From positions 10,899,186 to 10,963,185 of the forward strand of contig OZ199839.1 in the NCBI GenBank assembly GCA_964304625.1: a DNA stretch of 64,000 nucleotides, written 5' to 3'. This DNA is from Kudoa neothunni. Taxonomy: Eukaryota > Animalia > Cnidaria. Made by a program: the position numbers and the translations under genes. Under the pieces are notes generated by a model, which worked only from the letters and a program-made list of their open reading frames with translations, did not search any database and was not told the DNA's origin. This document shows, piece by piece, positions 1 to 42,713 of this stretch. Positions within the stretch are counted from its first letter, which is position 1, and every line of letters starts with the position of its first letter.

Positions 1-1903
1 CTAGAAGAAACCAGTGGTAGCTTCGAGGGTTACGAAGAGAAAAAATTTGGTATTATATTAAAATAAATTTATCAATCACAATTTATAGCTATCGTTGAGG
101 CTGCTGGTGCAAGTACACTCTTTTCTTCACCCACAACAGTGGGCATAACTTTTAGTCCTTCTCCTTATGATCCCAGTAATAATGGTGCAGTAAAATTCAA
201 CATTTGTGATTTGAAACACTTTCATGCTGACAAACCAAGGCCAACTTCCGGAGGAGGAATTGTAACCCAATGCACGAATGAAAAATGTGGTACAACATGT
301 GCGACAAGTTCAGTTATAAAGGGACTAACTGCAGGAAAAGCATACATTATTGAGATTACACCAGCAAATTTAGACAGTTACACCGATTTTAAAGAATACT
401 TGTTTTTTAGAACACGTAACTAATCGTATTTTTTTATAATTAAATAATAAATATGAATAGTTGCATCATTAAACTTGGCTGTCACATCTCCTACACCAAC
501 CGACGTGAGTGTTGCAGTCAAAGCGATTGATGGTGACGTAGGCAAGACAGTTAACGAACCAACTTGCTCATATTACATAAGTGAAACTGGTAAGGAATCA
601 TTTGTAGAAGCCGTCTGCGAGGATAGTGTTCCATGTAGAGGATTTTGTAGAGAAACAAAGAACCTGATCAATTTAAATCCTAAAACAAGTTACGATATTA
701 AGGTCGTTTCAAACAAAGATTATGGTATTAAAAAATATGAAAGTGTTACCACTAGTATATCTTGATAATCGAAATTAAATTTAACTCACTTATTAGCATT
801 TTCAACTCTTACACTTTCACGTACGTTCTTGGACAAGGGTTTTAAAGTGGTTGGTACCTTAACATCACCATATCCAAAAGCAGTATGTCATTATAAAATT
901 AATGTTAAAAACGATCAAACTTCAAAAGAGGTTTATTCATGTCCAGCAGTTGTTTCACCCACTCCAAATGTTAGTCCGCCAAATTCCAACAATGGACAAT
1001 CATCTAGTTCATCTCAACAACAGAAACTACAGGCATCTCATTTATTCGGTGATAATAAATTAGCTGAGATATATGTTGCGAGAGCGGCTACTACTGAGAA
1101 TAATGTTGGAAGTTCGTCTACAACCACTCAAAATACAAATGTTCCGCCAAAGATCCCATCATGCACCGAACCACCGCTTTGCACTAAGATATTATTTAGT
1201 GAGGGGTACGAAGCGGATAAAGAATACGAGGTTTTGGTGACAGCTGCAGAAAGATCAACCGAAGTTCTTATAAATATTCCTAAAAGTATTTTAAAAATAT
1301 AATTTTATCTACTTTTTTTAATATTAATAATTACTATAGATATGCCTCCAGAACAGCCTAGTGAGGCAGAAAGAGAAATAGCTGTTATCATTATAAGGGA
1401 GGGAGATACACTAAAAATCTCTTCATTGCTACCCAAGGGTAGGGATGATAACGCAAAATGCAAATGGATATTAAGAAACACGAGCGAGACATCACAGTTA
1501 ATCGTGAAAAAATGCGAGACAGAACGTACTAATGGTTGCGTTCTTCCGACGTGCAAGTCCTTCACAATTGAAAACATACGTGACGAAAATGATTATCATT
1601 TAACCGTCATTTTGGCTAATGATTCTAAAGTCTTTGGTATCGGGAAAATTAAACGAGGTATTTAAAATCGAAGGAATAGTAATATAATTGATTATTTAGG
1701 AGAAACTTCAAATCAATCAAGGTAAATGAATTAGTAATAACAAACTATAATATATATTTAGGGCGAGTTCGACCATGTATTAGACTTGTATTTGATGTTG
1801 TAAAGTTAAATCATACTTTAGGATCATTTCTATTGTCATTCCAGTTGTTATCATTGTGGTAGGAGTTGGATTTTATTTTGGTTACTGGAAGAATAAAGGA
1901 TAA
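1..1903 (+). CDS. Cys-rich FN3-like repeat type I membrane protein, array copy 1 (5'-truncated by window edge)
   Basis: Exons ..49, 89-415, 461-754, 797-1285, 1340-1657, 1700-1721, 1762-1776 and 1822-1903 join in frame across GT-AG introns of 39-54 nt. The protein ends in the TM helix MIISIVIPVVIIVVGVGFYFGYW-KNKG*. Paralogous to 8009-10941 and 13606-16535. Confidence 0.88.
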
Positions 1904-2655
1904 GCATAGACAGCTCAAATATTCATTCAGAAATTAATTTATTACTCTCCTTTATTTTTAATTATTTCACATATTTTATATTTTAAAATAATATTTTTCG
2001 CAAAATTATAACAATACATTGTTATTTTATTTAAGGAAGTTTCCATTATATGATTAATATAACCTATAAATAATATTTATAGTTTAAGAGTATACAATCA
2101 ACGACGGTTATTGCATAGGTGAATATTGCGCTCTTTTTGTTTTGTCATTATTTTATCATTTCATAGACCCCAATTTTATCTTCTAAGTGTTTTAAGCTAT
2201 TACGGAAGCATTTAAAATTATTTTAGAATTATTTATGACTAATGGAAATGGATATCGCACTGTTCATTTTTATTGCGTATTAACATTCAATTCCCCTATG
2301 TGGTTGTTCGATTGATATTACACATTAATTTCGGTCACCATTAAATTTAACAAAATCTTATAATCAACGTGTATTATTATTATTTGGTACTTTTTTTTAA
2401 AATAAGTATAACGAAACTTAACGTTGTGATCAATGTTTTTCAAATTTTTTATTAATAAAAATGATTCAGCCTTAATTTATTTTGCAATAAAAATTGAACT
2501 ATTAGTATATGTAGAGAAGAGATATTTTTCATAATTATAAATTTTATCCACATGCATAGATTTATTAGTACCTTGGTTTCATTACATGCTCTTTATATCT
2601 GAACAGATTCGTTTATTATAAACTAAAGTGTGGTTGTCGGAACTTAAATTAAAAA
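1904..2655 (+). repeat. 3' flank of array unit, duplicated at ~10942-11694 (shorter version after copy 3, ~16536-16670)
   Basis: Direct sequence similarity, with scattered substitutions, to the region downstream of copy 2. Confidence 0.85.
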
Positions 2656-3184
2656 TTATGATAATAGTCCATATATTGTAAGCTTTCAGTATTAGATCGT
2701 TTTAACGTTAAATTTAATCTAATATATTGAATAGAGTATATAATAAGAATACGTAATGAATTTTTCCATTAAACGTGGAGTTAATTGTCGATAAAAGTAA
2801 AAAAAATATTAAAAGGCAATTGAGAACATATTTTTATTCCAAATAACCCATAGCGGTTTTTCGTTTCCTTTTCGGCACCGTCTTCACACTTCTGTATAGC
2901 GTCAATAACTTGTTTAATAACGTAATCCTAGGTTATATGATTCATATGTATAATTTCCATATAATACAAAATTATTCATTAAATATATTTTACATTGTGC
3001 CATATACTGTTCTATATTATCCTTGTAACATGACAACTTACAAATAAAACAGGAATTCCATTTGACTGTTATTTAAAAATATTATATTTTTAATGTATAG
3101 TTATATATTAACAAAGTCTAATATAAGTGAAAATCAAAAAAAAAGATATAAGAATGCTAAAAATAATTATTACAAAAACAATGC

Positions 3185-3780
3185 CGAAAAAGGGGCATGA
3201 TAAACCACCGATGACCGATTTCTCAATTGATCTTTTTGTTGATCTCGCAAACAAAGCTTTAAGATGACGTACAGAAACTTAGTTGATGCTATCGAAAATA
3301 TTGATAGCTTATCAAATACAGTTGATTTAGTAGTCATACCCCCAAATCTTTTGAGTAAATTGACTGATAATCGGTAAGAATTCGTCCACAGAGAGTACAA
3401 CAACATTGATATTGGAATTGTTCCCGATGTATGTGGCGAAGTAGAAATCTTTGTTAACTTCGAAAATGATGAAAATATCGAAAACGGCGGAGCCTTATGA
3501 TGTAAAATCACTCCCCGTCGCAATTTATACATGAACGCAATAAATGAAGACATGGTAACCTGTAACCCATAGTACAGACATTATCTATAATGATTTCTCA
3601 CACATGTATGAGTCGTATGAAAATTATTTTAAATTTTTTGCCGAAAACTTGTCATTACCAGTCGTAAAAAAACAAATTAGCTCGTGTTATGTCGAAGAGG
3701 CCTAGTGTAATATGCGCTATAAAGAGACCAACACTAAATGACCAATAATCGAGCAAGCGTGATGTTCCTAAATATTACAG
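3185..3780 (+). mobile_element. Degenerate piggyBac (PGBD2/3-like) transposase N-terminal remnant
   Basis: Broken + strand reading YRNLVDAIENIDSLSNTVDLVVIPP...LTD...GIVPDVCGEVEI resembles the 'V-I-PP...TD-E...P-DV-G-VE' N-terminal motif of PGBD2/3-type transposases. Stops and frameshifts are present. Confidence 0.5.
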
Positions 3781-3939
3781 TAAGTGACGGGTCGTGGGCA
3801 TCTGTCATGGTTTGATAGCTTACACAATACTGTTATTAATTTAATTGTATAAAAGAATCACAGTTATAGTAAATTATGTGACCTTTAATTTTAATTGGTT
3901 TCGAATAAGAGTTTGCATAATTTTACGACTCGTGGGCAC

Positions 3940-4190
3940 TTGAAGAGAACCAAACAGTTTCGTTCCCTGAAAGATAAAGTGGATATAATCCAATATTATG
4001 AGAGAACATCAAATTAGAAAAATAGCAAAATAAAAGCCCTCAATTATTTTAGCTGAAAATCTCTGTCCTCATTGAATAGTATTTTGAATAATAAAGAATG
4101 TATAATGAAGGCTCATAATGAAAGACATGCTACAAAAAGCCGAAAAACATTAAAAAAGGTCATTTCGATACGCTATACCAGTTGTTATCA
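3940..4190 (+). mobile_element. Tigger/pogo transposase remnant (CENP-B-type N-terminal HTH)
   Basis: KRTKQFRSLKDKVDIIQYYE...SSLNSILNNKECIMKAH...SRKTLKK matches the HTH pattern at the N-terminus of Tigger transposases. The reading is frameshifted. Confidence 0.6.
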
Positions 4191-4743
4191 ACGGGGGATC
4201 CGCGGCAGGAATACATGTGAAGATTTTTTATTGCCATCTAAATTTAAATAATGTATCCGATATGTTCGGCGATGTCGAATATGAACAATTTTGTCCATTT
4301 TAATTAATTATTATTCTCGTAACACATACCTAAATTTTTGAATAATTTTAATAATAAATATTTTAAACCTATTGATTTGTTAAAACCCGACTGAAAGTTG
4401 ATAGTGGTGCTCCAAGAATCTGAGTTCGTTTTTGAATGCAAGAGCCCGAATTTCATCAAATTTTATCGTTTCGTCTTATTTCCTTTAAAAATTTTTTGCT
4501 TAGCAAGCATTTTGCGATATCAGGGATTGTGTTATTCGGTCGCAATTGAAATGACAGATGGTGATGACCCATGCTTGCTTTCACTAATGAACAATATCCA
4601 AAAAGTTAACGCCCTTGATTAAGGTTTCTACGCGTGCCACGTCACATTTCTTATCACGCATTTTTACAATCTTATCATTACTTCTTTTTTTTTATTAGAG
4701 AATTTGAGTTTTCTTATATAGTTTATTAAAATTTCATAATAAA

Positions 4744-6507
4744 TGTCAGCTATTGTTGGTTGTTTTTTAAAGAAACAAACGAAGATCGAATGTCCAAATG
4801 CAATTTTCGCGGAGTTAAAATAGTTTTTAAAGATATGGCAGGTAAGCGAACGACTGGCCGTATAAATAGACATCTATTAAAAGCTCATAATATAACAAAG
4901 AACAACTATAATGAATTCAGTAATTTTATTTATAATTGATAGTGTTTATTTTTTTAAAGTTAAGAAAAAAAAATTCATTGGATTCATACGTAAAAAAATC
5001 TGGTAGAAACTATACACTTGCCAGTTTAATTGCTGTCGACGGATTCACAATTCTTAAATTTGTGGAAGTATGTTTATAAAGCAGGGCAGGCTTTTGAAAA
5101 ATTTGGTCATGAAATGCCACAAAACCCGTAAAAAATAACCAATATAATTAAATCAGAGGTCACCGAAAAAAATGAAATTATAAAACAAATTCAATCGGAG
5201 TATGAAGAAGGCAAGTGGTTAACGGTTATTATAGACGAATGGACCGTTGGCACTCAAAAAAAGGTTCATGACTGTTGTCTTGGAATCCGATATTAAAACA
5301 ATGTTTTGAAGACAAGCTGTTTGAATTCAACGTTAACGTTGATTCATTGGTCGCCGTTGTTTTAGATGGTGCATCGGCTATGGAAGATTTTCAGAAAAGT
5401 ATTTCCTGCATACCACAAGTTTGTCTTTCTCTCTCTCGGGGTTCTTTTAGAAATCAAAGGGGTTATTGGGAGTGATAACGATGTGGTTGATAAATGTTCC
5501 TCCAATGATTTATCAGATGTTGATATAGAAATTATTATTGATAGTAACTTATCGTGCATAATATTTTTTACATTTATAACTAGGTAACTATAGAGGAGCT
5601 GTGTTTCGAATGAAGAAAATGATAAAATTTTTCAAACATTCGCCATTGCTACAAGAGAGTTTGGATAAACGCAGGCTCAGTGGAAGCAAAAAACCCCTGC
5701 GTTTAATCATACATAGAAACCAGATGGAACCGCCTTTACGATGCAATGGAGAGATTTTTAGAATTATGTCAGGAGATAAGGAAATTTGAGAAGAAATTTT
5801 GTAATTTATCGACATTAATTTTGATATTTAGAAAAAACTAATAGAGTATCCGCCTGCTTCAGATATAATTCTTCTGGAAGATATAAAAATATCACTGCCC
5901 CTATAGTCCTTTTATTAAATGTATTATCAAAGGAAACAATCAATTATAAAGACACTCATGCAATTTTTAAATTTGTCTTGGACAATTTATACCAACAAAA
6001 CGACTCACACGTCACATCAGTTGTTTTTTCATGGGATCACAGAATCAGAGAACACCGAAACGTTGTTTTGGCAACTACTGTTTCATATTTTAATAATAGT
6101 TAAGAATTTAGTAATAAAGTCGACTTTCTCATTGTAGTAAAGAGAACTGCTATAATTTTATACAGCAGCAGCATGCGAGACTATTTACATCTGAAAACAA
6201 TGTTGACGTTGAGGACGTTCCACTTAACCCCATTACCAGTCAACATCAAGATCTTCATTCTGGGTTTCAAAGTTTCATAGCCTCAAGAAAAAATGAGAAA
6301 ATCATAAAAGCCTAAATTTTAAATTCTTCAAAGATTTTTTATCTTGAAGGAGTTTTAAATGATAACCATAAATTGCTAAAAAATGCGCTTGAAAGTGTAC
6401 AACCCTCTAGCGTTCTGTCTGAGAAGGTATTTTCAAGTTCCGGAAAATGTTTGAGAAAAAGAAAGGCTAGAATTAGTGATAAGCTGCTGGATACTCTTAT
6501 GATTTAA
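4744..6507 (+). mobile_element. hAT-superfamily transposase pseudogene (BED finger + DDE + C-terminal dimerisation domain)
   Basis: BED-like CWLFFKE..SKCNF and TTGRINRHLLKAH; TLASLIAVDGF; WLTVIIDEWT; VAVVLDGASAM..QVCL; KFFKHSPL..ETRWN; C-terminal VQPSSVLSEKVFSSSGKCLRKRKARISDKLLDTL. Many stops and frameshifts. Confidence 0.88.
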
Positions 6508-8008
6508 TCTATAAACAATTATTTTAATAAAATAAAAATAAAAACTATTATAACAAAATTATCAATTTATTTGTTTGACACTATTTCAATTCTACGTTAT
6601 TTATTTTATAATTCTGGATTTCGTTAAAAAATGATAGGTTGGCGTTTTTTCATAATCAAAAATGAAGGTATTTAAATTAAATTAATTGTCGCGCTATTGT
6701 TAGAAATCTTTAATTTTTACAATTAGTACACAACAAATTTCGTACTTTTTTTAGTGTATTATTTTCTTAAACTTGTCTAAATTAAAGCGTATTTGAAGTA
6801 ATTATATATTTTTTAGAAAGTTCAGAGTAAATCGAATCAATAATTTTTTTGGTTAGTTGAAGTTTAAAAACTGTAATTTTCTAATCTTTATCTTAATAAT
6901 ATCGTGTTGTTGATGAACAAAACTAAAGGTTAAGATCTGTTCGGTTTTCGGTTTTGCCAAAAACCGAGACTGATTTTAAAGTGTATTTATTAATTCATAT
7001 AATTAAGCTTCTATTATCAATTCATGCAGTGTTTTAAACAAAGAATGACTAAAATAAGTTTCCAATCTACCACATTTTTACATACTTTGATAATGGTAAA
7101 GTATTCGGCATCTAAAAAACGTCCTCTTGCACATGTTTTTTCGAATTTCTTTTTTCATGATTCTTGATTATAAAATAAAGGAATATGGAGAGCAAAAATT
7201 CAGCTCAAAATAATAACTTCAAAATTTTGAGAATTATTCATCCGGACGCGGTTGGATACACGTGCAATGCCCATCTTCTTTCAACAAAAATTGAATTATT
7301 TTGTTTCTTTCTTAGTTATTAACTCAAAAGTTATTTATTATTACTATTTAGATTTTTACTATTGATATATGGAAATTTTATATAAACCAACTTTAAAAAT
7401 ATACTTATTGCAGATTTCGGAAAATTAACGCATGTTTCATTATAATAAAAATAATTTTAGAATTTTAAAAATGGACCTTGATGTCGTACGATTTTTTTTA
7501 GTTTATAACTTTTTTTATTAAAATTTAGAAACCTAATTTTTTAAAATGATAAAATTTAATTTTTTTACCGTGTAGTATCTGTAATATATTTAAAAAAATT
7601 CTTAAGCTACGTTTATATTGTTTTATAAGTTTTTTTATATGTCAAAATTCGGTAACAAATTCAACAAAATGTACGAATTGAGAATATTACAAGATGTAAA
7701 CACAATATGTTAACTAAGGTCATTATTTTTATCGGTATACATATAATTGACTAAAACTAATAAATTTATAGAAATAACAATTTTTGGAATTTATGGTAAT
7801 AGTATTTTTATTTAATTTTTATCTGAAATGATTCACCGCGACATTAACATAAGTCTTTTTATATTAAGGCAATTTGATTTATTACGTGTTATGCGCAACC
7901 TATAATATTTGACATTCATTAACACATGAATAGGCGTATACATACACAAATAGTTATTGTTTATTCAAACTGTATAATATAGTCGGATTTACTACATACT
8001 TTATAATT

Positions 8009-10941
8009 ATGTATAATTATTTCGCATTTTTTGCAGTGATTAGTGGAATTTTATGTAATAAATTATGTAAAATCACATTCTAACTTTATTATCATAGTTA
8101 ACGATAAATATTGTGCTGAAAACCCCCCCAAAGTCCCTGAAAAAGTCCTTTCATATCTTGTTGCAGACAACAATAAAGTGCAACTGATTTTATCTGGCTC
8201 AGTATATGGCGTGACCGATACTAAATGTCTTATCAAGAAGCAAAATGATCCCATCAGCGAGTTTACGAACATTAATACTTGTGATGGAAATGAAGCTAAT
8301 ATAACTGGGAAATGTGTTCGTACATGTACTGGAGAAAACAACAAATTGACATTCAATGCGTTATCGCCTAGAACCGAATATATTTATGTGTACTCAGGAA
8401 ATAATGCAGAAACAATAAAAGAAAATACTAAAGGTGGAGACGTTTTCGGACTTTCGATTCGTATTTTAAATTAAATTTTTCCGTATAATAAATTAAATAT
8501 AGCACTTTTGGTAAATCCATTTATCACAATTTCCACAGATGATTCTCAGAAACTAAAGCTTGAAGCTAAAACATGTGCAAAAGTGAATTGCCCGATTTAT
8601 TACAAAGGTGTGAAATATGCTGAAGGTACGGCGGGAGGAGACTGTGATACTCCTAATACAGCAAATACAGTTGATTTTGACATCATGATACCTCATTATG
8701 AGATGAAATGCATTAATTATCCCAGTTTCTTTTACGAAATGCCGAATCCATACATGAAAAAGAATATTGATGTTTATAAACCACAATATTATGTAGCATA
8801 TAAGACCGACGATAAAACAAAATATCTCTTAAAATTTACCAATCCATTCCCAGCTGAGATATGTTTGTTCAATATTAAAGATGCGGCGACTGATGCTTCT
8901 GGAAGTACGGCGAGTTATGCATCAGTGTGTGGAGGTGAAGACGGAAAGAAGTGTTTTGCACCCTGCAATAATGTCGAACTAATACTCGCTGAAACTAAAC
9001 CTATTGTTAAAATATTAATTCAAACTAGGCATCATAAACTAGAAGAAACCAGTGGTAGCTTCGAGGGTTACGAAGAGAAAAAATTTGGTATTATATTAAA
9101 ATAAATTTATTAATCACGATTTATAGCTATCGTTGAGGCTGCTGGTGCGAGTACACTCTTTACATCACCCACAACAGCGGGCATAACTCTTAGTCCTTCT
9201 CCTTATAATCCTAGTGATGATACAGTTAAGTTCACCACTTGTGCTTTGAAACATTTCCCCGCCGACATACCGAGGCCAACTGCCAATGGAGCAACAACGA
9301 AATGCACAACCAATGATCCATGTACCAATGATTGTGCAACCAGTCACGTTATAAAAGACCTACTAACTGCAGGGAAAGCATACATTATTGAGATTACACC
9401 AGCAAGCATATCTAACCATAATGACTTTAAAGAATACTTGTTTTTCAGAACACGTAACTAATCGTATTTTTTTATAATTAAATAATAAATATGAATAGTT
9501 GCATCATTAAACTTGGCTGTCACATCTCCTACACCAACCGACGTGAGTGTTGCAGTCAAAGCGATTGATGGTGACGTAGGCAAGACAGTTAACGAACCAA
9601 CTTGCTCATATTACATAAGTGAAACTGGTAAGGAATCATTTGTAGAAGCCGTCTGCGAGGATAGTGTTCCATGTAGAGGATTTTGTAGAGAAACAAAGAA
9701 CCTGATCAATTTAAATCCTAAAACAAGTTACGATATTAAGGTCGTTTCAAACAAAGATTATGGTATTAAAAAATATGAAAGTGTTACCACTAGTATATCT
9801 TGATAATCGAAATTAAATTTAACTCACTTATTAGCATTTTCAACTCTTACACTTTCACGTACGTTCTTGGACAAGGGTTTTAAAGTGGTTGGTACCTTAA
9901 CATCACCATATCCAAAAGCAGTATGTCATTATAAAATTAATGTTAAAAACGATCAAACTTCAAAAGAGGTTTATTCATGTCCAGCAGTTGTTTCACCCAC
10001 TCCAAATGTTAGTCCGCCAAATTCCAACAATGGACAATCATCTAGTTCATCTCAACAACAGAAACTACAGGCATCTCATTTATTCGGTGATAATAAATTA
10101 GCTGAGATATATGTTGCGAGAGCGGCTACTACTGAGAATAATGTTGGAAGTTCGTCTACAACCACTCAAAATACAAATGTTCCGCCAAAGATCCCATCAT
10201 GCACCGAACCACCGCTTTGCACTAAGATATTATTTAGTGAGGGGTACGAAGCGGATAAAGAATACGAGGTTTTGGTGACAGCTGCAGAAAGATCAACCGA
10301 AGTTCTTATAAATATTCCTAAAAGTATTTTAAAAATATAATTTTATCTACTTTTTTTAATATTAATAATTACTATAGATATGCCTCCAGAACAGCCTAGT
10401 GAGGCAGAAAGAGAAATAGCTGTTATCATTATAAGGGAGGGAGATACACTAAAAATCTCTTCATTGCTACCCAAGGGTAGGGATGATAACGCAAAATGCA
10501 AATGGATATTAAGAAACACGAGCGAGACATCACAGTTAATCGTGAAAAAATGCGAGACAGAACGTACTAATGGTTGCGTTCTTCCGACGTGCAAGTCCTT
10601 CACAATTGAAAACATACGTGACGAAAATGATTATCATTTAACCGTCATTTTGGCTAATGATTCTAAAGTCTTTGGTATCGGGAAAATTAAACGAGGTATT
10701 TAAAATCGAAGGAATAGTAATATAATTGATTATTTAGGAGAAACTTCAAATCAATCAAGGTAAATGAATTAGTAATAACAAACTATAATATATATTTAGG
10801 GCGAGTTCGACCATGTATTAGACTTGTATTTGATGTTATAAAGTTAAATCATACTTTAGGATCATTTCTATTGTCGTTCCAATTGTTATCATTGTAGTAG
10901 GAGTTGGATTTTATTTTGGTTACTGGAAGAATAAAGGATAA
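8009..10941 (+). CDS. Cys-rich FN3-like repeat type I membrane protein, array copy 2 (~846 aa, 10 exons)
   Basis: Exons 8009-8054 (signal peptide MYNYFAFFAVISGIL), 8098-8460, 8503-9087, 9127-9453, 9499-9792, 9835-10323, 10378-10695, 10738-10759, 10800-10814 and 10860-10941. Total 2541 nt, in frame, all introns GT-AG. Modules end in FN3-like L-x-P-x-T-x-Y-x-I/V-x-V motifs. Confidence 0.9.
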
Positions 10942-11694
10942 GCATAGACAGCTCAAATATTTATTATGAAATTAGTTTATTACCCTCCTTTATTTATAAT
11001 TATTTTAATATATTTTATATTTTAAAATAATATTTTTCGCAAAATTACAACAATACATTGTTATTTTATTTAAGGAAGTTTCCATTATATGATTAATATA
11101 ACCTATAAATAATATTTATAGTTTAAGAGTATACAATCAACGACGGTTATTGCTTAGGTGAATATTGCGCTCTTTTTGTTGTGTCATTATTTCATCGTTT
11201 TATAGACTCCAATTTTATCTTTTAAGCGTTTTAAGCTATTATGGAAGCATTTAAAATTATTTTAGAATTTTTTATGACTAATGGAAATGGATATTCCGCT
11301 GTTCATTTTTATTGCGTATTAACATTCAATTCCCCTATGTGGTTGTTCGATAGATATTACACACTAATTTCGGTCACCATTAAATTTAACAAAATCTTAT
11401 AATCAACGTGTATTATTATTATTTGGTACTTTTTTTTAAAATAAGTATAACGAAACTTAACGTTGTGATCAATGTTTTTCAAATTTTTTATTAATAAAGA
11501 TTCAGCGTTAATTCCTTTTGCAACAAAAGTTGATCTATTAATATATGCAGAGAAGAGATAATTTTCATAATTATAAATTTTATCCGCATACATAGATTTA
11601 TTAATACCTTGGTTTCATTACATGCTCTTTATATCTGAACAGATTCGTTTATTATAAACTATAAGTGTGGTTATCGTATATTAGATTAAAAATT

Positions 11695-13293
11695 GACAGT
11701 GGATATTCTCATGGAAACGAATAACTCCTCCGTTATAGGCGATATTTTGAATCTGACTTCATATTTGAATTGAGCTACTTTTGATTGAATTTTTTATGGA
11801 AAAATTGTGTGAAATTTAAAGAATAAAAATTTAACACTTTGTTTGCCCTATTTACATTGTTCACTAGTAGTACACTCACGTTTTTGAGTCTAATATTATG
11901 TAATATAAACATTATAATTGAAATGAAAAATAAAAACATTTATTAATAAGTAGAAACTGTTCTGTTCGTGCATTCTGTGTCACCCACCATGTCTGAATAT
12001 GTGCGTGAATCCTATTTGGTTGTGGGGCGTTCTATTACGTGAGACTATTTCTAAATTTTAGAGAACTTTGAAATAACTGAAATCTGTACGACATGTTTAT
12101 ATATTACATTAAATTGTAGAAGAGAAATTTAAGCTCCTGTAAGGTATAAAATACCAATCGCATGGAATAAGTCTGAAAAGTGGTGCCATTATTGCTTCCT
12201 ATGAAGCGCTTTTAAATTGACTTGTTCAAACTTATACCTTTTATTAACAAATATTATTTTACTGTTAAAATTTCAAAGGTGATGATTTCGAGGAAATTTT
12301 TTGGGCGGACAGCTAAACAACCATGACTAGTGGATAAGTTGATCAATTCTTCATTGGAGTGAAAATTGATTTTTCTGAGCTATTAAAATTACACATCCCT
12401 CAGTATCGGGAAACAAATGTTTACAACCTTAAAATGATATTTTTCATAACAATTCAAAATGTTCAAGGACGAATTAACCGTAATTTTAACTCCAACATTG
12501 TTTATTATAATACTTACTACATTCGTTCGTTGGCTCGCTTTACAAAAGCCAAACAAACGTACCCCAAAAATCACCATTCAAAAATTTTCATTTTATACAT
12601 TTACCCATTGAGACGATAATAGAGGGATTAATGCAGAAAATTTAGAATCACCCTTCTTGTTAAACATTGATAAATGAGTTTAAATTAATAAATATATAGG
12701 TTTACTCTTAAATTTGAACTCATAGATTCCTATATTTACAAATAGGCATCATAAAAACCTTCCTCATACTTCTGATTATAGTAAATACATTTGTAGGGAT
12801 GAAACAACGAAAATTCCCCAAAATTATGGTACAATCTTATAGATACATATGAAAAGTGATTTACATCGGTGTAAAATAGCTTTAATCCAATTGATATTCA
12901 TTAAATAACGATAATTATGTTAAATTTATATTAAAAAATGTTTAGATAGAAACGTACATACTTCGTAGGAGATTGGGGAGGACTTATTCTAAGTTAAACT
13001 GTGTGCGTTGAGACGTATTAAACTAAAGGTTTCTAACCACCATTAGATATATCCACATTTTCATTTCAATTATAATGTTTATATTACATAATATTAGATT
13101 TAAAAAGGTGAGTGAACTACTAGTGAACAATGTAAATAGGGCAGACAAAGTATTGAATTTTTATTCTTTAAATTTCGAACAGTTTTTTCACGAAAAAATT
13201 AGATTAAAAATATCTAAATTCAAATATGATATCAGATTTGAAATATCATCTATAACAGAGAAGTTATTCGTTTCCATGAGAATAGCCACCGCC
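11695..13293. mobile_element. Non-autonomous DNA element with ~235-bp imperfect terminal inverted repeats
   Basis: 11695-~11930 (gacagtggatattctcatggaaacgaataac...cattataattgaaatgaaaa) is the imperfect reverse complement of ~13057-13293 (ttttcatttcaattataatg...gttattcgtttccatgagaatagccaccgcc). It begins where similarity to the copy-1 3' flank stops. Confidence 0.8.
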
Positions 13294-13605
13294 TATTTTA
13301 AAGATAATAAATAAGTTTTATCTTTCATGCGAATGTGATTAAATGAATATTTCGCAACATCTCTGTTGACTGTATTTCTTTATTTATATGAAACATTAAA
13401 TTTTTTTAATCGAATTGTATGTAAAATATTTCATAGCAACGATAAATTAATTATTTTTATTTTATGCATTTTTGATTATTTACATATTTTGTGAAACCTA
13501 TAATATTTTGTCTTCATTAACACATGAATAGGCTTATACATACATGAATAGTTATTGTTTATTCAAACTGTGTAATACAGTCTGATTTACTTCCTATTTA
13601 CAAAT

Positions 13606-16535
13606 ATGGATAATCATTTGGCATTTTTTGTTGTAATTATTGGCCTATTATGTAATGAATTATATGAGATCACATTCTAACTTTATAATCATAGTTAATT
13701 ATAAATATTGTGCTGAAATCCCCCCAAAAGTCTCTGAAAAAGCTCTTTCATATCTTATCGCCGACAACAATAAAGTTCAACTTATTTTTTCTGGCTCAGT
13801 GTATACACCTGGCTCCCAAAAATGCCTTATAAAAAAAAACGATTCTACCGGCAGATTTATTGATATTAATACGAATAATGTAAAATGTGACACAAGAGTA
13901 ACTGGCAAATGTATCCTTACATGTACTGAAGAAAACAACAAATTGACATTCAATGAGTTATCGCCTAGAACCGAATATATTTATGTATACTCAGGAAATG
14001 ATGCAGAAACAATAAAAGTAAATACTAAAGGTGGAGATGTTTTCGGTCTTTCGATTCGTATTTTAAATAAAATCTTTTTTTATAATAAATTAAATATAGC
14101 ACTTTTGGTAAACCCAATTATCACAATTACTACAGATGCTCAGAAACTAAAGCTTGAAGCTAAAACATGTGCAAAAGTGGATTGTCCCATATATTACAAA
14201 GATGTGAAATATGCAGCTGGTACTGGAACAGATAACTGTGAAACTGCTAATACAGCAAATACAGTTGATTTTGACATTATGATACCTCATTATGAGATGA
14301 AATGCGTTAATTATCCCAATTTCTTTTACGAAATGCCAAATCCATACATGAAAAAGAATATTGACATCTATAAACCACAATATTATGTGGCATATAAAAC
14401 CGACGATAACAAAAAATATCTCTTAAAATTTACCAATCCATTCCCAGCTGAAATATGTTTTTTCAGTATTAAAGATGGAGCTGATAGCACCGATGGGAAT
14501 ATTGCTAATTATGCATCAGCGTGTGGAAATGTGGCCCCAAAGGAATGTTATGCACCTTGCGATAATGTCGAACTAACGCTCGCCGAAACTAAACCAATTG
14601 TTGAAATATTAATTCAAACTAGGCATCATAAATCAGGAAAAACTGGTTCAAATATAGAAGGTTATACAGAGAAAAAATTTGGTATTATATTAAAATAAAT
14701 TTATTAATCATAATTTATAGCTATCGTTGAGGCTGCTGGTGCAAGTACACTCTTTTCTTCACCCACAACAGTGGGCATAACTCTTAGTCCTTCTCCTTAT
14801 AATCCTAGTAATAATGGTGCAGTTAAATTCACCACTTGTGATTTAAAACATTTTCCCGCCGACATACCGAGGCCAACTGCCAATGGAGCAACAACGAAAT
14901 GCACAACCAATGATCCATGTACCAATGATTGTGCAACCAGTCACGTTATAAAAGACCTAACTGCAGGGAAAGCATACATTATTGAGATTACACCAGCAAG
15001 CATATCTACTCATAATGGCTTTAAAGAATACTTGTTTTTCAGAACAAGTAACTAATCGTATTTTTTTATAATTAAATAATAAATATGAATAGTTGCATCA
15101 TCAAACTTGGCTGACACATCTCCTACACCATCCGACGTGAGTGTTGCAGTCAAAGCGATTGATGGTGACATAAGCACGGCAGATACCGAACCAACTTGCT
15201 CATATTACATAAGTGAAACTGGTAAGGAATCATTTGTAGAAGCCGTCTGCGAGGATAGTGTTCCATGTAGAGGATTTTGTAGAGAAACAAAGAACCTGAT
15301 CAATTTAAATCCTAAAACAAGTTACGATATTAAGGTCGTTTCAAACAAAGATTATGGTATTAAAAAATATGAAAGTGTTACCACTAGTATATCTTGATAA
15401 TCGAAATTAAATTTAACTCACTTATTAGCATTTTCAACTCTTACACTTTCACGTACGTTCTTGGACAAGGGTTTTAAAGTGGTTGGTACCTTAACATCAC
15501 CATATCCAAAAGCAGTATGTCATTATAAAATTAATGTTAAAAACGATCAAACTTCAAAAGAGGTTTATTCATGTCCAGCAGTTGTTTCACCCACTCCAAA
15601 TGTTAGTCCGCCAAATTCCAACAATGGACAATCATCTAGTTCATCTCAACAACAGAAACTACAGGCATCTCATTTATTCGGTGATAATAAATTAGCTGAG
15701 ATATATGTTGCGAGAGCGGCTACTACTGAGAATAATGTTGGAAGTTCGTCTACAACCACTCAAAATACGAATGTTCCGCCAAAGATCCCATCATGCACCG
15801 AACCACCGCTTTGCACTAAGATATTATTTAGTGAGGGGTACGAAGCGGATAAAGAATACGAGGTTTTGGTGACAGCTGTAGAAAGATCAACTGAAGTTCG
15901 TATAAACATTCCCAAAAGTATTTTAAAAATATAATTTTATCTACTTTTTTTAATATTAATAATTACCATAGATTTGCCTCCAGAACAGCCTAGTGAAGCA
16001 GAAAGAGAAATATCTGTTATCATTATAAGGGAGGGTGATACACTAAAAATCTCTTCATTTCTACCCAAGAGTAAGGATGATAACGCAAAATGCAAATGGA
16101 TATTAAGAAACACAAGCGAGACATCACAGTTAATCGTGAAAAAATGCGAGACAGAACGTACTAATCGTTGCGTTCTTCCGACGTGCAAGTCCTTCACAAT
16201 TGAAAACATACGTGACGAAAATGATTATCACTTAACCGTCATTTTGGCTAATGATTCTAAAGTCTTTGGTATCGGGAAAATTAAACGAGGTATTTAAAAT
16301 CGAAGGAATAGTAATATAATTGATTATTTAGGAGAAACTTCAAATCAATCAAGGTAAATGAATTAGTAATAACAAACTATAATATATATTTAGGGCGAGT
16401 TCGACCATGTATTAGACTTGTATTTGATGTTATAAAGTTAAATCATACTTTAGGATCATTTCTATTGTCGTTCCAATTGTTATCATTGTAGTAGGAGTTG
16501 GATTTTATTTTGGTTACTGGAAGAATAAAGGATAA
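13606..16535 (+). CDS. Cys-rich FN3-like repeat type I membrane protein, array copy 3 (~845 aa, 10 exons)
   Basis: Exons 13606-13651 (MDNHLAFFVVIIGLL), 13695-14057, 14100-14681, 14721-15047, 15093-15386, 15429-15917, 15972-16289, 16332-16353, 16394-16408 and 16454-16535. Intron positions and phases are the same as in copy 2. Confidence 0.9.
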
Positions 16536-17132
16536 GCATAGACAGCTCAAATATTTATTATGAAATTAGTTTATTATTTTAACATATTTTATATTTTAAA
16601 ATAATATGTTTCGCAAAATTACAACATTACATTATTATTTTATGCAAGAAAGTTTCCATTATATGATTAATTAAAACTTTAAGATATATATTCATATGAT
16701 ATTGACAGAAAAATAATTGATTAAATATATTTATAAATAATAGATATATCATTAAATCTAAATTTAATTAATTTATTTATTTATCTAAATTCAGTAAAAG
16801 CTGTTAAAATCACTTAATCCAAAATCGAATTGTTAGGATCAGATATTAATCATATTTTTCACTATTACTAATTTTTCAAAATAAAAAGTCATTAAAATTA
16901 GCACTAAAAATACAATAGGAGTAGTTTATCTTCAATGTTTTCAATTTATAAAGAAAATAATCTAAAAATTTTATCCGCGCAGATTTAAATAAGAAAACCT
17001 TGATTACACATTACACACACACACACACACCTGAGAAACGAGGACAATTTTAAATATAAAGTAACACGTCAGTTAAGTTAGCAACCAGATAAGTGAATTA
17101 ACAAAGTAATACGTAATGTATAGAAAAGGGTG

Positions 17133-17962
17133 TTATTGAGTCAGAATTGGAGCTGAATTATCTTCTAAATGGGTATTCTAAAAAATAATAACGTTAATTA
17201 TTCAAAGATTATTGAACATAGTTAAAAATAATTATAAAAATACACGATAAGGTTTTGATCTTGAATTGGTCCAGCTGAGTCCCTAACAAATTAAAAGTAA
17301 TAATATGATCATAGATAAAAATACATATTTATGACGATTTAAAAACAGGGTCATTCCAAAGCAAAGTAACTCCACCACAAAACAAATCAGCTGTAAACAA
17401 CACACACTCACGGATATGAACATTAGATCTTTGGTGAAATTGGAACATTCTAGTATAATTTGAGCATCTTGAATGATACAATTAATTCGGTAGGTGTAAT
17501 AATGATTGAAGACGCAATAAATAATGACTCCATTAACACAAGCCATAAGAATATTTGTCAAATTCATCAATATGGCCTAAAATGTAGTATAAATAAAAGA
17601 GTATCTTTCAAATATAAAAAGAAAGCATATCAAACAGTATACGATGATAAAATGTTGAGGATAACACACATAAAGTTGGCCGAATAAAACTAGCGAAACT
17701 ACCTACATAATTAACGTTTACTTCATTACATTCAACAGTATATAAAACTAATAAAATGGAGGCTTACTATTGGAAGATTTAAAATAGATAATGTTCCCCA
17801 CGTAGAGTGGATATCGAAATAGTACACAATGAGTCCAATGAAAAGGTCGCTAATGGCAGTGACTGTGTAGAACACATGATTGTGGAAAAGTATGGTTCTG
17901 TAGGTGGTGGTTGCTCTAGGACGGTAGCAACAGCTGGATAGGCGTTGTCGAAATGTAGCCAT
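17133..17962 (-). CDS. Small multi-exon four-TM membrane protein, family unknown
   Basis: MATFRQRLSSCC...LNLPI | VVSLVLFGQLYVCYPQHFII | AILMNLTNILMAC...LFLNRHKY | GLSWTNSRSKPY.. join in frame via short GT-AG introns. There are four hydrophobic segments, with a Cys pair in the loop before TM4. The 3' end is uncertain. Confidence 0.6.
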
Positions 17963-18083
17963 ATCTTTTGTTTATTGAAAGAGAGAATAGATTTGTAGTA
18001 GTTGATGAGTTGGCTATTGTAGCTAATAATACCATCATCTAGGTAACCACCAAAACATGGAAACAAATGAACACAATAATTGT

Positions 18084-20062
18084 CTAATAAACAACTCCAA
18101 TCATATTTAGATAGAAAGGGCGAATCAGTGAGATATCTGCGCAGAGGAAAACGTTGTTTTTAGTTTGAAAGTGGATTTTATTGTTGGTTCTGAAAATGTG
18201 ATGATTTCGCAGGTGGATTTGTGGAGTGTGGAAGTATTCCAGATTATGGCATTTGACAGGTTCGCCAACAAGTTTTGTGCAATGGATCCAAAACTTGCAT
18301 ATATCTTGATATTTGGGTTGAACAACCGAAAATTCTTGTCTATATTTGTCGTTTGAGTAGAGAAGCGGGATAGGATCTTTGAATTGGTCTCCCATTCGTA
18401 TAATCTTCAAATGGTAAAACGCCAACATGTACAATTGATACAGATCGTCATACTCACCAAAAGTGGTGATAACACGAATGCCAGAATGAATTCCGAATTT
18501 ACCTTAAATAAATTAACAACAAAAACCCAAAACATAATTTACATACTTTTGGGGAATATGTTGGGTGGGCCAATCAGTACTACATCTTTGTATGTATAAA
18601 GTAAACGAGAAAAATCCAAATCCAGTAGCATTCTTTGTTCGTGGCGAGATTCTGTTCTAGTTTGTGCCGCATGGAACACATTGCAATAATCCACAATCAA
18701 ACTAGGATTATATTTTGAGCAAAACTCTTCGATTTCTATCAATTTTTGCTCAAGATATTTGTTTGTTGTTTTTTGTGAGATTCTAAAACGATTACATAAA
18801 ATATAGTTGATGGGAAAGTCATCTATATTTAAAGATACTTCCAGATATTTCCCACCAAATCTATCAACATCTCTTCAAACATCTTTAAATCTTGCCAATT
18901 CTTTAGCTCCATCAAGATATGTTGTCCACAATGAGGACATTTATTGTCCACACAACTTCTCAGTGTAAACAAGCTATCCAGGATTTTTCTGCTGGCTCCA
19001 TTAGAAATCGCCATGCAGTCAACTGATTCAATCACATTGGCATAGTTATTGTAACGGTGACACATCAACGACAAACGTTTCAGTCTACCATTAAATACCA
19101 ATTTAAATACAACGCCTAATAACTTTCATACTTTGTCATCAATGATAATTGATGCATATTAGACATAAAATTATAATAATATTGTAAATCAATAAAATAG
19201 TTATTGAACACATAAGGAAATCGATGATATCCAAGGTAGGCCCCGTATTTCACCACGAAAACAACAAAATATTCAACTGCTAATCTTAGCAAATTAAAAT
19301 CAGGATTGCATTGTCTAAGCAATAGATCTTCAAATACATCACTAAGATATTTGATGGGTATGGCGATTTGTCGCATAAATTTCTATTAAGTTGATTGAAA
19401 TTGAGTTATTAATTTGATTATTTCCAAAAAGTACTGGATTCAATCTAGTTTTTCCACCCGAGTCTATTTCGGTAAAATTTCTGAGCTGTTTTACAGTGAT
19501 ATTTACCTATTCAAAGAATGTTAATACATATAAACAACAATAATAATATTAATAGCATTGAAAATTATAAAGAATAATTCTCAAATCTTACCGGATTCAT
19601 GTCAATTACATCTTTCGCAGGAAAATAATAGCGAGGAAAATATTTTCCGATATTGGAGTTCATGTATTTTTTAAATTGTTCCATCTTCTCTTCACCACGC
19701 ATATAATTTTCCAAACATTGACATAGTAGGAGACACTTGGCAGTGTAGGGAAAAATGATTTCGTTGTTGGAGCCTTGCTTTGTTTCATTCTTTATATTGT
19801 AGTTGTCAGTGAACAACAAATTTTCTCCGACACCACGATTATGAAGAATTGCTATAGTGAAGTTATTCTCAGATTGACTGGTTTTTAGAACGCAAGCAGG
19901 AAATATATGAGTCACAGCCTTAAAATTCTCATGTCTTCGGTTCGATGATTCTGATGTGATATTATTAATGGATACACCATTTTTTGGCATGTGCACTAAT
20001 TTTCTATAGAAAATTGAAGAATTTTTTATCACGGCTGCAGATCGCAATATCTGTGGCCTCAT
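18084..20062 (-). CDS. PRORP: Divergent protein-only RNase P catalytic subunit (PRORP/MRPP3-like), probably mitochondrial
   Basis: Basic N-terminus resembling a mitochondrial presequence. Zn knuckle CPHCG; QKTT..LIEIEEF...LIVDYCNVF (cf. KTTPQEL..F..VIDGLNV); EYDDLYQLY (cf. SEDDPFLLY); YSNDKYR (cf. TRDLMR/TNDEMR); C-terminal IHF..FLCA supplies the His/Cys Zn ligands. One apparent frameshift near 19125. Confidence 0.8.
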
Positions 20063-27294: not shown

Positions 27295-28356
<1,062 letters not shown>

Positions 28357-40383: not shown

Positions 40384-42713
40384 TTAATTGTGCACTATTT
40401 CATGTATGATATTTTTTATTGTCATTACGACACCTAAATCAGTGTTAATAACATGGCGGCTATTAAGCGCCTATATTAAGAAATACCTGATACAGATAGA
40501 AAAGCGCCAAACATCATCAAAACAACACAACTAACTATGGTGAGCCAATTGACAGGAGGTCTTCCAGAATATTCATCTTCATGCCAAAACGTTGCCAGAT
40601 AGATCATAGGAGGGAACACCAAGCTGAGACTTGAACAACACATAGCACCAACCAAACTGATAAGATTGTCCAACTGGGGTATAGCTACGGCAGCAATGAA
40701 GGTGAGTGTGACACAGAGAAAAATTATTAAATTCTCTGTGAATTTTTTCTTTCTTGTATCATTAATCCGTTTTTTCACTGAGGGTAGAATAATGCTGGTG
40801 GCGACGAAAAACTGGAGAAAGTAAGTAAGAAAAACGCCTAACGCATAAATCATTTTCACTGAGTTGTATCCACTATACAATAATTTTAAAATATGAATAA
40901 GATTGCATAAGGGTGTATGTAAACAAACATTACTTTGTGTTGGGGATATTAAGGGTGACACTAGGTTGTATTTTATCGCCGTATGCCATATAACCAAACA
41001 GTCCCATACTTATCATAATAACAACCACAACAACCATTGATAATATGACCGTTCGATTATATTTTTCTTTGTTTTTGATTTTGTTATATAAAGGCATAAC
41101 CTAATTAGGTGATGAGATAGATACAAAAAAGTTGTTATTAATTTTTAAACAAACACGTTCTTAATATGTAAGGTGATTTAAAAACCAGCTAATGGTGATA
41201 TATAACTATTTTTGAAAACTTACTGCCGGTATTCCTTCATAAGCATACATAACCGATGTGAAAAACAGCAGAATACTGGAGGTGGATTGAATGTAAGGAT
41301 ATTTTTGATGTATGTCAATACTGCCAAAGATGGCAACAAAAGTTCCCAAAAATCCGGCCAGACAGAATAAATTAGCACATATAGAAAATAGAAGCATGCA
41401 ATGCATATCTTTAACGAATGATATCGGTAGAATAACAAAATACAAAATGGTTATCCATATCCGAACGTCATGAAGAGCGTTAAAGGTCAACTAGAAAAAA
41501 TAATTAGAGTGTACCAGAGGAACTGGTATGACAGAAAAGAGCCTACTTCGTGTAAGGTCTTAGCCATGAATAAAAACAACGTGGAGCATACTCCAAGTTG
41601 GGTGGAAATCAAGAACATATTGATTGTGTAGCTTGTAGAATAATTTTAGATTTGAATCTTTTCAACTTATTACTTACCATACGTACTTGGAACGTTCTTT
41701 TAAATATGGTAGAAATGCATATCGTGCCGTTCCAGCATATCCAATGATTGGTTTTTTATATCTATTGAATAAGAAATTAATTTCCTATTTCACAATATTC
41801 TAGGCATTTAAATTTCTAATTTATTATATCATATAAGAAAATAAATCATTTAAGAAAAACTTCACAAAAAAGATCATCATAGTTGACTATTATAACAAAT
41901 AATTACCTTTTAGATATAACCTTCGAGGACTCAAGAACCATAATGATACAACATATAATAGGAAATGATAGGAGAACCATCACAATAGGGGCAAACTAAA
42001 TTATCATAGTTGAGGTAAAATAAATCAAATAGTATAATTTGATCGTTAAAACTTAAGCATATTACAGATTTTAAAAAACAGTAGTAATAAAAAATCGTTC
42101 AAGTATTTTATTGCTGTCAAATTCCCTGATCAGTAATTAATGTTGGTTAAAAATTATTACCACAATTCCTCCTCTTGATACCGCCTGTGGTAAGGCTAGC
42201 AAACCAGCACCAATGTTCGACTTGACTAAGTGAGTGAATGCGGTCACCAGTCTACCGAAACACACTACTGACCATATCTCAATTAATCAGCACTTACGAC
42301 ATATCTGCCACAGGCAAATATTCAGGAGATTCAAGTTGATTGTCCACCTCGGTAATAAGGTTTTCATCGTCGCAAATATCATCTTCCATAATGCTAGCAC
42401 TTAGAGCATCGTCACTCAACATCCAATCTTGTTCACTGTCACAAATCAGATTAGCACGCATTGTTGACTGGATCACCAGCAGGGTTCTGTGTAGTTAAAA
42501 TCGATTACTATCCACAAATGTGAATATTCTTATATACCAGCAACCTAATCCGTGGAATTATGTGAGTATTCTCGGCTGTACGTTCGTCTCTAAGAAGTAA
42601 CCAGCAAATGACTCACTTAATTCTATCGATAGATTTCCAAAAGCTATTGATGAACTAAGTAATTTTTTGAACATCGACTGAACTAAGCCATACCTACTGC
42701 GAGACGGTATCAT
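40384..42713 (-). CDS. SLC36A: Proton-coupled amino acid transporter (SLC36/Aa_trans family)
   Basis: TAFTHLVKSNIGAGLLALPQAVSRGG; FLISTQLGVCSTLFLFMAKTL; LFFTSVMYAYEGIPA; FGYMAYGDKIQPSVTLN; IPQLDNLISLVGAMCCSSLSLVFPP. Multi-exon; the 5' exons (above ~42480) are tentative. Confidence 0.9.

Follow-up and report, generated by a model that had tools for sequence, protein, structure and literature searches.

In the clustered protocadherins, gene conversion homogenizes part of the ectodomain while the distal domains that determine specificity stay diverse. The Alr proteins of Hydractinia are built from V-set-like immunoglobulin (Ig) domains, and many of them carry signaling motifs in long tails. The locus described here, a tandem array of genes for modular, cysteine-rich surface proteins, lies in a 64,000-nucleotide stretch of the Kudoa neothunni genome (assembly GCA_964304625.1, contig OZ199839.1, forward-strand positions 10,899,186 to 10,963,185), which we call the window and in which all positions below are numbered. 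We propose, with a probability of roughly 0.7, that the array is part of a lineage-restricted type I membrane protein family with at least about 200 genes, that neighboring genes exchange sequence in patches, and that the products form an extracellular repertoire of binding, adhesion or coat proteins.

The genome measures 40.26 Mb with about 30% GC and consists of three chromosomes (C1-C3) and an 18-kb contig. The window contains three gene copies (c1, c2 and c3) in head-to-tail orientation on the same strand, as had been predicted from the sequence; both the gene models and the direct-repeat spacings of 9038 and 5594 nt support this arrangement. Fetching 30 kb of upstream sequence showed that c1 is a complete gene, its 5' end lying roughly 1 kb outside the window, and revealed one more intact copy (c0) further upstream. 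Further family exons were found neither in these 30 kb, beyond c0 and the 5' part of c1, nor at positions 17-64 kb of the window. The array thus starts before the window, as suggested originally, but the supposition that it might be larger added only c0 within the 30 kb. The spacers between the four copies range from 2.7 to 22 kb. The copies and their exons are:

-25146 to -22307 relative to the window: fourth intact copy c0, about 22 kb upstream of c1
-941 to 48, reaching into the upstream flank: exon 2 and most of exon 3 of c1
1-1903, plus strand: 3' part of c1 inside the window, the whole gene continuing upstream
1-49, 89-415, 461-754, 797-1285 and 1340-1657, plus strand: c1, end of exon 3 and exons 4, 5, 6 and 7
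1700-1721 and 1762-1776, plus strand: c1, micro-exons
1822-1903, plus strand: c1, transmembrane (TM) exon
8009-10941, plus strand: c2, complete
8009-8054, 8098-8433, 8503-9087 and 9127-9453, plus strand: c2, exons 1, 2, 3 and 4
9499-9792, 9835-10323 and 10378-10695, plus strand: c2, exons 5, 6 and 7
10738-10759 and 10800-10814, plus strand: c2, micro-exons
10860-10941, plus strand: c2, TM exon
13606-16535, plus strand: c3, complete
13606-13651, 13695-14030, 14100-14681 and 14721-15047, plus strand: c3, exons 1, 2, 3 and 4
15093-15386, 15429-15917 and 15972-16289, plus strand: c3, exons 5, 6 and 7
16332-16353 and 16394-16408, plus strand: c3, micro-exons
16454-16535, plus strand: c3, TM exon, ending in KNKG and a stop

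Searches and fold predictions were run exon by exon, and protein length was obtained by summing exon lengths. In the ten-exon plan of the gene, an exon for the signal peptide precedes six module exons, which are followed by micro-exons of 22 and 15 nt and by a TM exon. All exon borders are AG/GT, the introns following exons 1 to 7 are in phase 1, and the introns of the module exons are 39-69 nt long. Exon 1 encodes a hydrophobic N-terminus of the signal type, the reading frames of exons 2 to 7 are open in all four copies, exon 6 contains an insert rich in Ser, Thr, Pro, Gln and Asn, and the last exon encodes a hydrophobic helix of 22 residues followed by K-N-K-G and, in c3, a stop at position 16535. 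The c3 exons add up to 2511 nt, which corresponds to 836 aa and not to the approximately 846 aa first estimated.

Five paralogues from other clusters, 28-69% identical per exon, retain the exon order, the splice phases, both micro-exons and the TM exon. Their cytoplasmic tails are likewise basic and only 3-5 residues long (KNRG, RKK, KKNKS, NKNKD and KNKS). The GT/AG borders of the micro-exons are preserved, and the closest paralogue encodes the same E-T-S-N-Q-S through synonymous changes, which lends comparative support to the predicted 3' end with its micro-exons and TM exon. The signal peptide, the single TM helix and the KNKG tail of the original prediction thus agree with the ten-exon model and with the plan kept in these paralogues. 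The product is predicted to be a type I membrane protein of the secretory pathway with a long modular ectodomain and almost no cytoplasmic domain, and the Ser/Thr/Pro-rich stretch of exon 6 is probably O-glycosylated.

A separate observation concerns intron 7 (16290-16331; also 1658-1699 and 10696-10737). If this intron were retained the reading frame would end two codons on (...KRGI-stop), and a secreted isoform without TM helix is conceivable on this basis.

The module with the clearest fold is encoded by exon 5, and the longest distinct unit by exon 3:

15093-15386 in c3 (also 461-754 and 9499-9792), plus strand: exon 5 module, fibronectin type III (FN3) fold, four conserved Cys, motif S-x-P-C-R-G-x-C
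14100-14681 in c3 (also 8503-9087), plus strand: exon 3 module, 194 aa, eight conserved Cys, invariant aromatic core

Each gene has one exon 5 module. Its AlphaFold2 model, built with an alignment of 20 paralogues, had a mean pLDDT (predicted local distance difference test) of 90.2 and a pTM (predicted template modeling score) of 0.82. A Foldseek search of the PDB returned FN3 domains or FN3-derived monobodies in nearly all of the best rows, with E values of 1e-3 to 1e-2. With VIA-align, Z-scores of 8-9.3 were obtained over 83-88 of the 97 residues against FN3 domains of contactin, titin, fibronectin and CDO; 106 chains reached Z >= 8, the top rows were all FN3, and root-mean-square deviations were 2.2-3.8 Å over 75-88 residues. 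Comparison with fn3 clusters of the ESM Atlas gave TM scores of 0.65-0.72. We therefore confidently assign the modeled exon 5 module to the FN3 sandwiches.

At the sequence level the modules give little. All module exons were scanned with the Pfam fn3 family (PF00041) and none matched at E <= 1, and exon 2 of c2 gave weak, sub-threshold matches to FN3-like families (E 0.049). For exon 3, a Pfam scan of 23 paralogues returned nothing usable, a PDB sequence search with the exon 3 profile gave 0 matches, and an ESM Atlas feature search reached no score above 0.83, a value at the level of noise. Seven of the eight Cys of exon 3 are invariant and the remaining one occurs in at least 90% of the aligned paralogues. 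Modeling suggests that exon 3 probably comprises two beta-sandwich halves, the model itself being poor. The FN3 or Ig-like fold is established by modeling for exon 5 alone; that the other modules of the chain are of the same kind we infer. The earlier count of about seven Cys-rich modules is roughly right, with six module exons of which exon 3 is probably double, and a confident fold is available for exon 5 only. Family-wide, strands and loops of exon 5 showed no significant difference in variability (Mann-Whitney p = 0.26), and the idea of hypervariable loops on conserved strands in this module was dropped.

Divergence among the copies is distributed unevenly along the gene. The nucleotide identity of c2 and c3 is 81% in exon 2, 85% in exon 3, 95% in exon 4 and 97-100% in exons 5 to 10, and c1 and c2 are 80% identical in exon 4 and 100% identical from exon 5 to exon 9, introns included. 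In-frame indels among the copies occur in exons 2, 3 and 4. The claim that the distal exons diverge far more than the proximal ones within the array, with in-frame indels, agrees with these per-exon identities. Synonymous divergence (dS) and the features discussed below are as follows:

Exon 2: dS within the array 0.38-0.58
Exon 3: dS within the array 0.20-0.37
Exon 4: dS within the array 0.09-0.55, the low end being the c2-c3 pair (0.085)
Exons 5 to 7: dS within the array 0-0.15
409-1799 matching 9447-10837, plus strand: 1391-nt tract without differences between c1 and c2, crossing four introns
14871-15018, plus strand: hypervariable patch in exon 4, 65-68% nucleotide identity in all pairs except c2-c3 (98%), with pN/pS (nonsynonymous to synonymous differences per site) of about 0.6-0.74

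The ratio of nonsynonymous to synonymous divergence (dN/dS) was 0.35-0.6 wherever the number of changes sufficed, and the whole-exon values were all below 1. With dS so different between the zones and dN/dS in this range, the zones therefore differ in age and not in selective regime. The whole alignment of c1 and c2 has 289 differences in 3059 sites, and the 1391-nt tract is their most recent conversion or duplication tract.

The four copies also show mosaic relationships. Parsimony-informative sites among c0-c3 fall in contiguous blocks in the order B(8), A(9), mixed(24), B(15) ... C(10) ... A(17), C(10), A(7), and the groupings of successive blocks (c0 with c2 against c1 with c3, then c0 with c1 against c2 with c3, again c0 with c2 against c1 with c3, then c0 with c3 against c1 with c2, and so on) are mutually conflicting. 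Within exon 3, c1 tracks c3 through the first half and then, toward the end, c2. At the start of exon 5, c3 differs from c1 and c2 by nine amino acids with zero synonymous changes; this is due to the segment being common to c3 and c0, between which it differs at one residue. The contrast between tip and stalk arises mainly through patchy gene conversion or unequal exchange between neighbors, which has affected the 3' end most often or most recently. Taken as a whole, selection is purifying, with relaxation in a few patches. Positive selection was considered as well and rejected: whole-exon dN/dS stays below 1 everywhere, and the single exon 5 window above 1 is based on few changes.

Five distant paralogues were each compared with c3, and their per-exon identities show a different pattern from that within the array:

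Exon 2: 35-47% identity to c3
Exon 3: 55-66% identity to c3
Exon 4: 31-63% identity to c3
Exon 5: 42-69% identity to c3
Exon 6: 28-53% identity to c3
Exon 7: 39-57% identity to c3

Across the family the best conserved unit is the distal double module of exon 3, with the membrane-proximal exons 6 and 7 among the least conserved. The constant stalk is an effect of this locus and of recent date, not a property of the family. The original prediction had interpreted the variable tip on a constant stalk as the layout of variant surface antigens or allorecognition receptors; that interpretation is not supported, given the family-wide conservation of exon 3 and the near-zero dS and identical introns of the stalk.

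The size of the family was estimated from the whole genome. The motif SxPCRGxC, searched as a DNA pattern, gave 199 matches against 1 for the reversed control. Protein searches returned 497 (exon 5), 517 (exon 3) and 249 (exon 2) first-look candidates, and exon 2 has at least 148 matches. Of the 517 exon 3 candidates 150 were scored; all had E <= 6e-58, nearly all were full length, and outside the array they were 51-69% identical. Very few family matches contain stops, and among the matches listed there are clusters on all three chromosomes. The lists of family locations are lower bounds, and the family comprises at least about 200 genes. The genome-wide count proposed along with the original prediction is thus available, at 199 motif matches and, for exon 3 and exon 5 each, some 500 first-look candidates. 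As a side observation, the top-150 matches listed leave zones without a family member at about 6.2-10.7 Mb on C1, 2.9-5.7 Mb on C2 and 5.0-8.3 Mb on C3. The clusters are placed outside these central zones, each about 3-4.5 Mb long, in a way that resembles fast-evolving families on nematode chromosome arms.

Beyond this genome, the only true members that turned up when 1.84 billion representatives were searched with the profile were unnamed open reading frames (ORFs) of 61-128 aa, and a word-indexed search with the exon 3 profile found two outside ORFs. The outside family ORFs originate from ENA ERZ28624939 and from Logan SRR31175926 and SRR33849685, and one outside contig carries exons 4 to 7 in the same order as here. 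Two of the outside ORFs (P0004 and P0008) were compared, and with no locus of this genome does their identity exceed about 50%; they therefore come from other species. Related species that carry the family have thus already been sequenced without its being recognized. Long bacterial FN3 proteins that matched were rejected as members, with only the C-terminal strands aligning, and literature searches for a described matching family gave nothing relevant. The family is apparently lineage-restricted and undescribed. That it had not been recognized before is in line with the blank Pfam and PDB sequence searches and with outside matches that are unnamed, exon-sized ORFs only.

Several observations weigh against parts of this interpretation. 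Sliding-window pN/pS values rise to 0.7-0.9 at residues 51-85 of exon 2, 121-155 of exon 3 and 51-75 of exon 4, and exceed 1 in one exon 5 loop only, with very few changes and in a segment shared with c0; the raised patches leave room for diversifying selection. Introns 1-3 are 88-95% identical, a closer likeness than at synonymous positions in the exons on either side and one that does not follow from simple conversion. This excess likeness may reflect splice-signal constraint in introns of 39-69 nt or selection for exon diversity. Judged from four sequences, the intron likeness and the raised patches would both be consistent with selective pressure that is relaxed or diversifying in some regions of the distal modules. 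For the module chain, the exon 3 model has a pLDDT of 60 and its best Z-score of 7.2, against tandem FN3/Ig receptors, is within the noise of the tool. Comparison of the modules with hhalign linked only exons 4 and 5 (47%, E 2e-4), all other pairs being under 15%. The absence of annotated relatives of full length speaks only weakly for novelty.

The explanation that we favor, a lineage-restricted repertoire with exchange between neighbors, would work as follows. The protein chain would start with a signal peptide and continue with disulfide-containing beta-sandwich modules, one per phase-1 exon and at least one of them FN3, followed by a Ser/Thr/Pro-rich stretch, a short stalk from the two micro-exons, the TM helix and a basic tail of 3-5 residues. 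As the four copies show, exchange between neighbors keeps exons 5 to 10 and their introns near-identical, leaving exons 2 to 4 as mosaics of older, diverged segments. The proteins would form an extracellular repertoire of glycoproteins for binding, adhesion or the cell coat, and signaling would need partner proteins since there is no signaling tail. Diversity would come from many germline paralogues reshuffled by conversion and not from a programmed switch.

With about 3 kb per gene and at least 200 copies, the family would occupy at least 1.5% of the 40-Mb genome, and it probably accounts for a greater fraction of the genes. A large and mostly intact family is likely to be central to the dealings of the organism with its surroundings, as surface coat, in adhesion or in host contact. 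In addition, the array offers a clean natural case in which only part of a gene undergoes concerted evolution. Annotators should note that a tip/stalk layout in a single array is no evidence for antigenic variation and that synonymous divergence and distant paralogues should be checked first.

A more specific function is possible, although we consider it unlikely: a germline repertoire of several hundred variable binding proteins with which this small, perhaps host-associated animal would recognize host, self or mate, with conversion as the generator of diversity in exons 2 to 4. If true, this would be an animal counterpart of the mosaic surface-antigen families of protozoa, built on FN3-like modules, with the conserved exon 3 double module and the stalk supplying the frame.

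Narrower forms of recognition are improbable. The array could encode an allorecognition, gamete-recognition or homophilic identity code like that of Alr, Botryllus FuHC or the clustered protocadherins, in which distal modules set specificity and proximal ones are homogenized. The homogenized membrane-proximal and diverged distal exons recall the protocadherin pattern, and the patches of raised pN/pS lie in exons 2, 3 and 4. Yet every copy has its own exons 5-10 and there are no shared constant exons, a tail of four residues cannot signal, and the distal double module of exon 3 is the most conserved unit across the family. We give little credence, too, to a germline repertoire of immune-type receptors, or of receptors that bind host molecules, working with a signaling co-receptor. 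Such a repertoire would explain a large, mostly intact and rapidly diversifying family of beta-sandwich ectodomains and the variable patches on an invariant frame of Cys and aromatic residues, but it is at odds with the exon 5 module, where variability is not significantly different between strands and loops.

Programmed antigenic variation, with a silent repertoire, one or few members expressed and conversion making mosaics as in protozoan variant surface antigens, is very improbable. The repertoire is indeed large, its tandem clusters lie away from the chromosome centers, mosaic gene conversion is present, the tiny, near-invariant tail recalls the variant-specific surface proteins (VSPs) of Giardia, and the RNA runs of the organism are labeled metatranscriptomic, which may mean life inside a host. 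But all copies examined are complete genes that have their own start, and no arrangement like an expression site plus donor cassettes is seen; dN/dS is 0.35-0.6 with a strongly conserved scaffold, and the organism is a multicellular animal, whose HSC70 finds its best matches, at no more than 78% identity, among arthropods, rotifers and flatworms. We know of no such antigen-switching system in animals. That the array is an assembly artefact of mis-joined haplotypes or collapsed repeats, as the 100% identity of c1 and c2 over 1391 nt might suggest, is hardly credible given their dS of 0.2-0.55 in exons 2-4, the unequal spacings (9.0, 5.6 and, to c0, 22 kb), the recurrence of like arrays on all three chromosomes and, as a weak point since they could themselves have been the source data, the contigs of four runs from 2021, all of one sample, which contain 63-88% of the copy-3 words.

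The surroundings of the array contain repeats and ordinary genes:

2844-6576, no strand: dispersed repeats in the c1-c2 spacer, at about 2844-3685, 4168-4634 and 5097-6576
17283-20062, minus strand: multi-exon gene, no Pfam match
27295-27555, minus strand: adenylate kinase exon (PF00406, E 6e-6)
40476-41490, minus strand: exons of an Aa_trans amino-acid transporter (PF01490, E 1e-17)

The difference between the 9.0-kb and 5.6-kb spacings is due to the dispersed repeats in the c1-c2 spacer. An element of about 840 nt has at least 13 genomic copies (76-84% identity) and one of about 440 nt at least 24 (81-86%); a 1.5-kb segment has a single copy of 82% identity, on C3. The ORFs of this spacer gave no Pfam match to a transposase or reverse transcriptase domain, and because they are without Pfam domain the repeats are probably non-autonomous elements. 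The description of the locus as rich in transposable elements is accurate as far as dispersed repeats with dozens of genomic copies go, but no such enzyme domain accompanies them. A further repeat in the 3' flank is common to c1-c3, with near-copies at about 1958-2080, 10997-11035 (just past the c2 stop) and 16570-16690. The downstream neighbors of the array, at 17-64 kb of the window, are ordinary genes.

Comparison with known systems places the family closest in fold to FN3 proteins such as contactins, NCAM, titin, shortened Dscam (sDscam) and cytokine receptors. Common features are the modeled exon 5 sandwich (Z 8-9.3), a family profile whose C-terminal strand motif draws in FN3 proteins, bacterial ones among them, one phase-1 exon per module, and a type I chain of modules with a TM helix. 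Unlike those proteins, the modules reach no Pfam family, have conserved Cys pairs and motifs of their own (SxPCRGxC), include the 194-aa unit of exon 3, and occur in several hundred paralogues in 40 Mb. The clustered protocadherins of vertebrates and the sDscam arrays of chelicerates are similar as tandem units of surface proteins. They differ in that here all four copies have their own exons 1-10 and stop and there are no shared constant exons, and in that the modules resemble FN3 rather than cadherin or Ig domains, with almost no cytoplasmic domain.

With Hydractinia Alr the family has in common the clustering of type I proteins, variable membrane-distal domains and a small invertebrate genome, whereas FN3 is the confident fold here and the tail is four residues long. 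The module exons gave no Ig match in Pfam and the protein searches no named relative that would point to Alr kinship. The Alr-type analogy drawn originally therefore fails on domain type (FN3) and on the tail (KNKG, and 3-5 residues in five paralogues). The VSPs of Giardia and other variant surface proteins of protozoa differ from this family in fold and Cys pattern, and the genome that carries the family is that of an animal, but they share with it a large Cys-rich type I repertoire, a very short conserved basic tail and mosaics generated by conversion.

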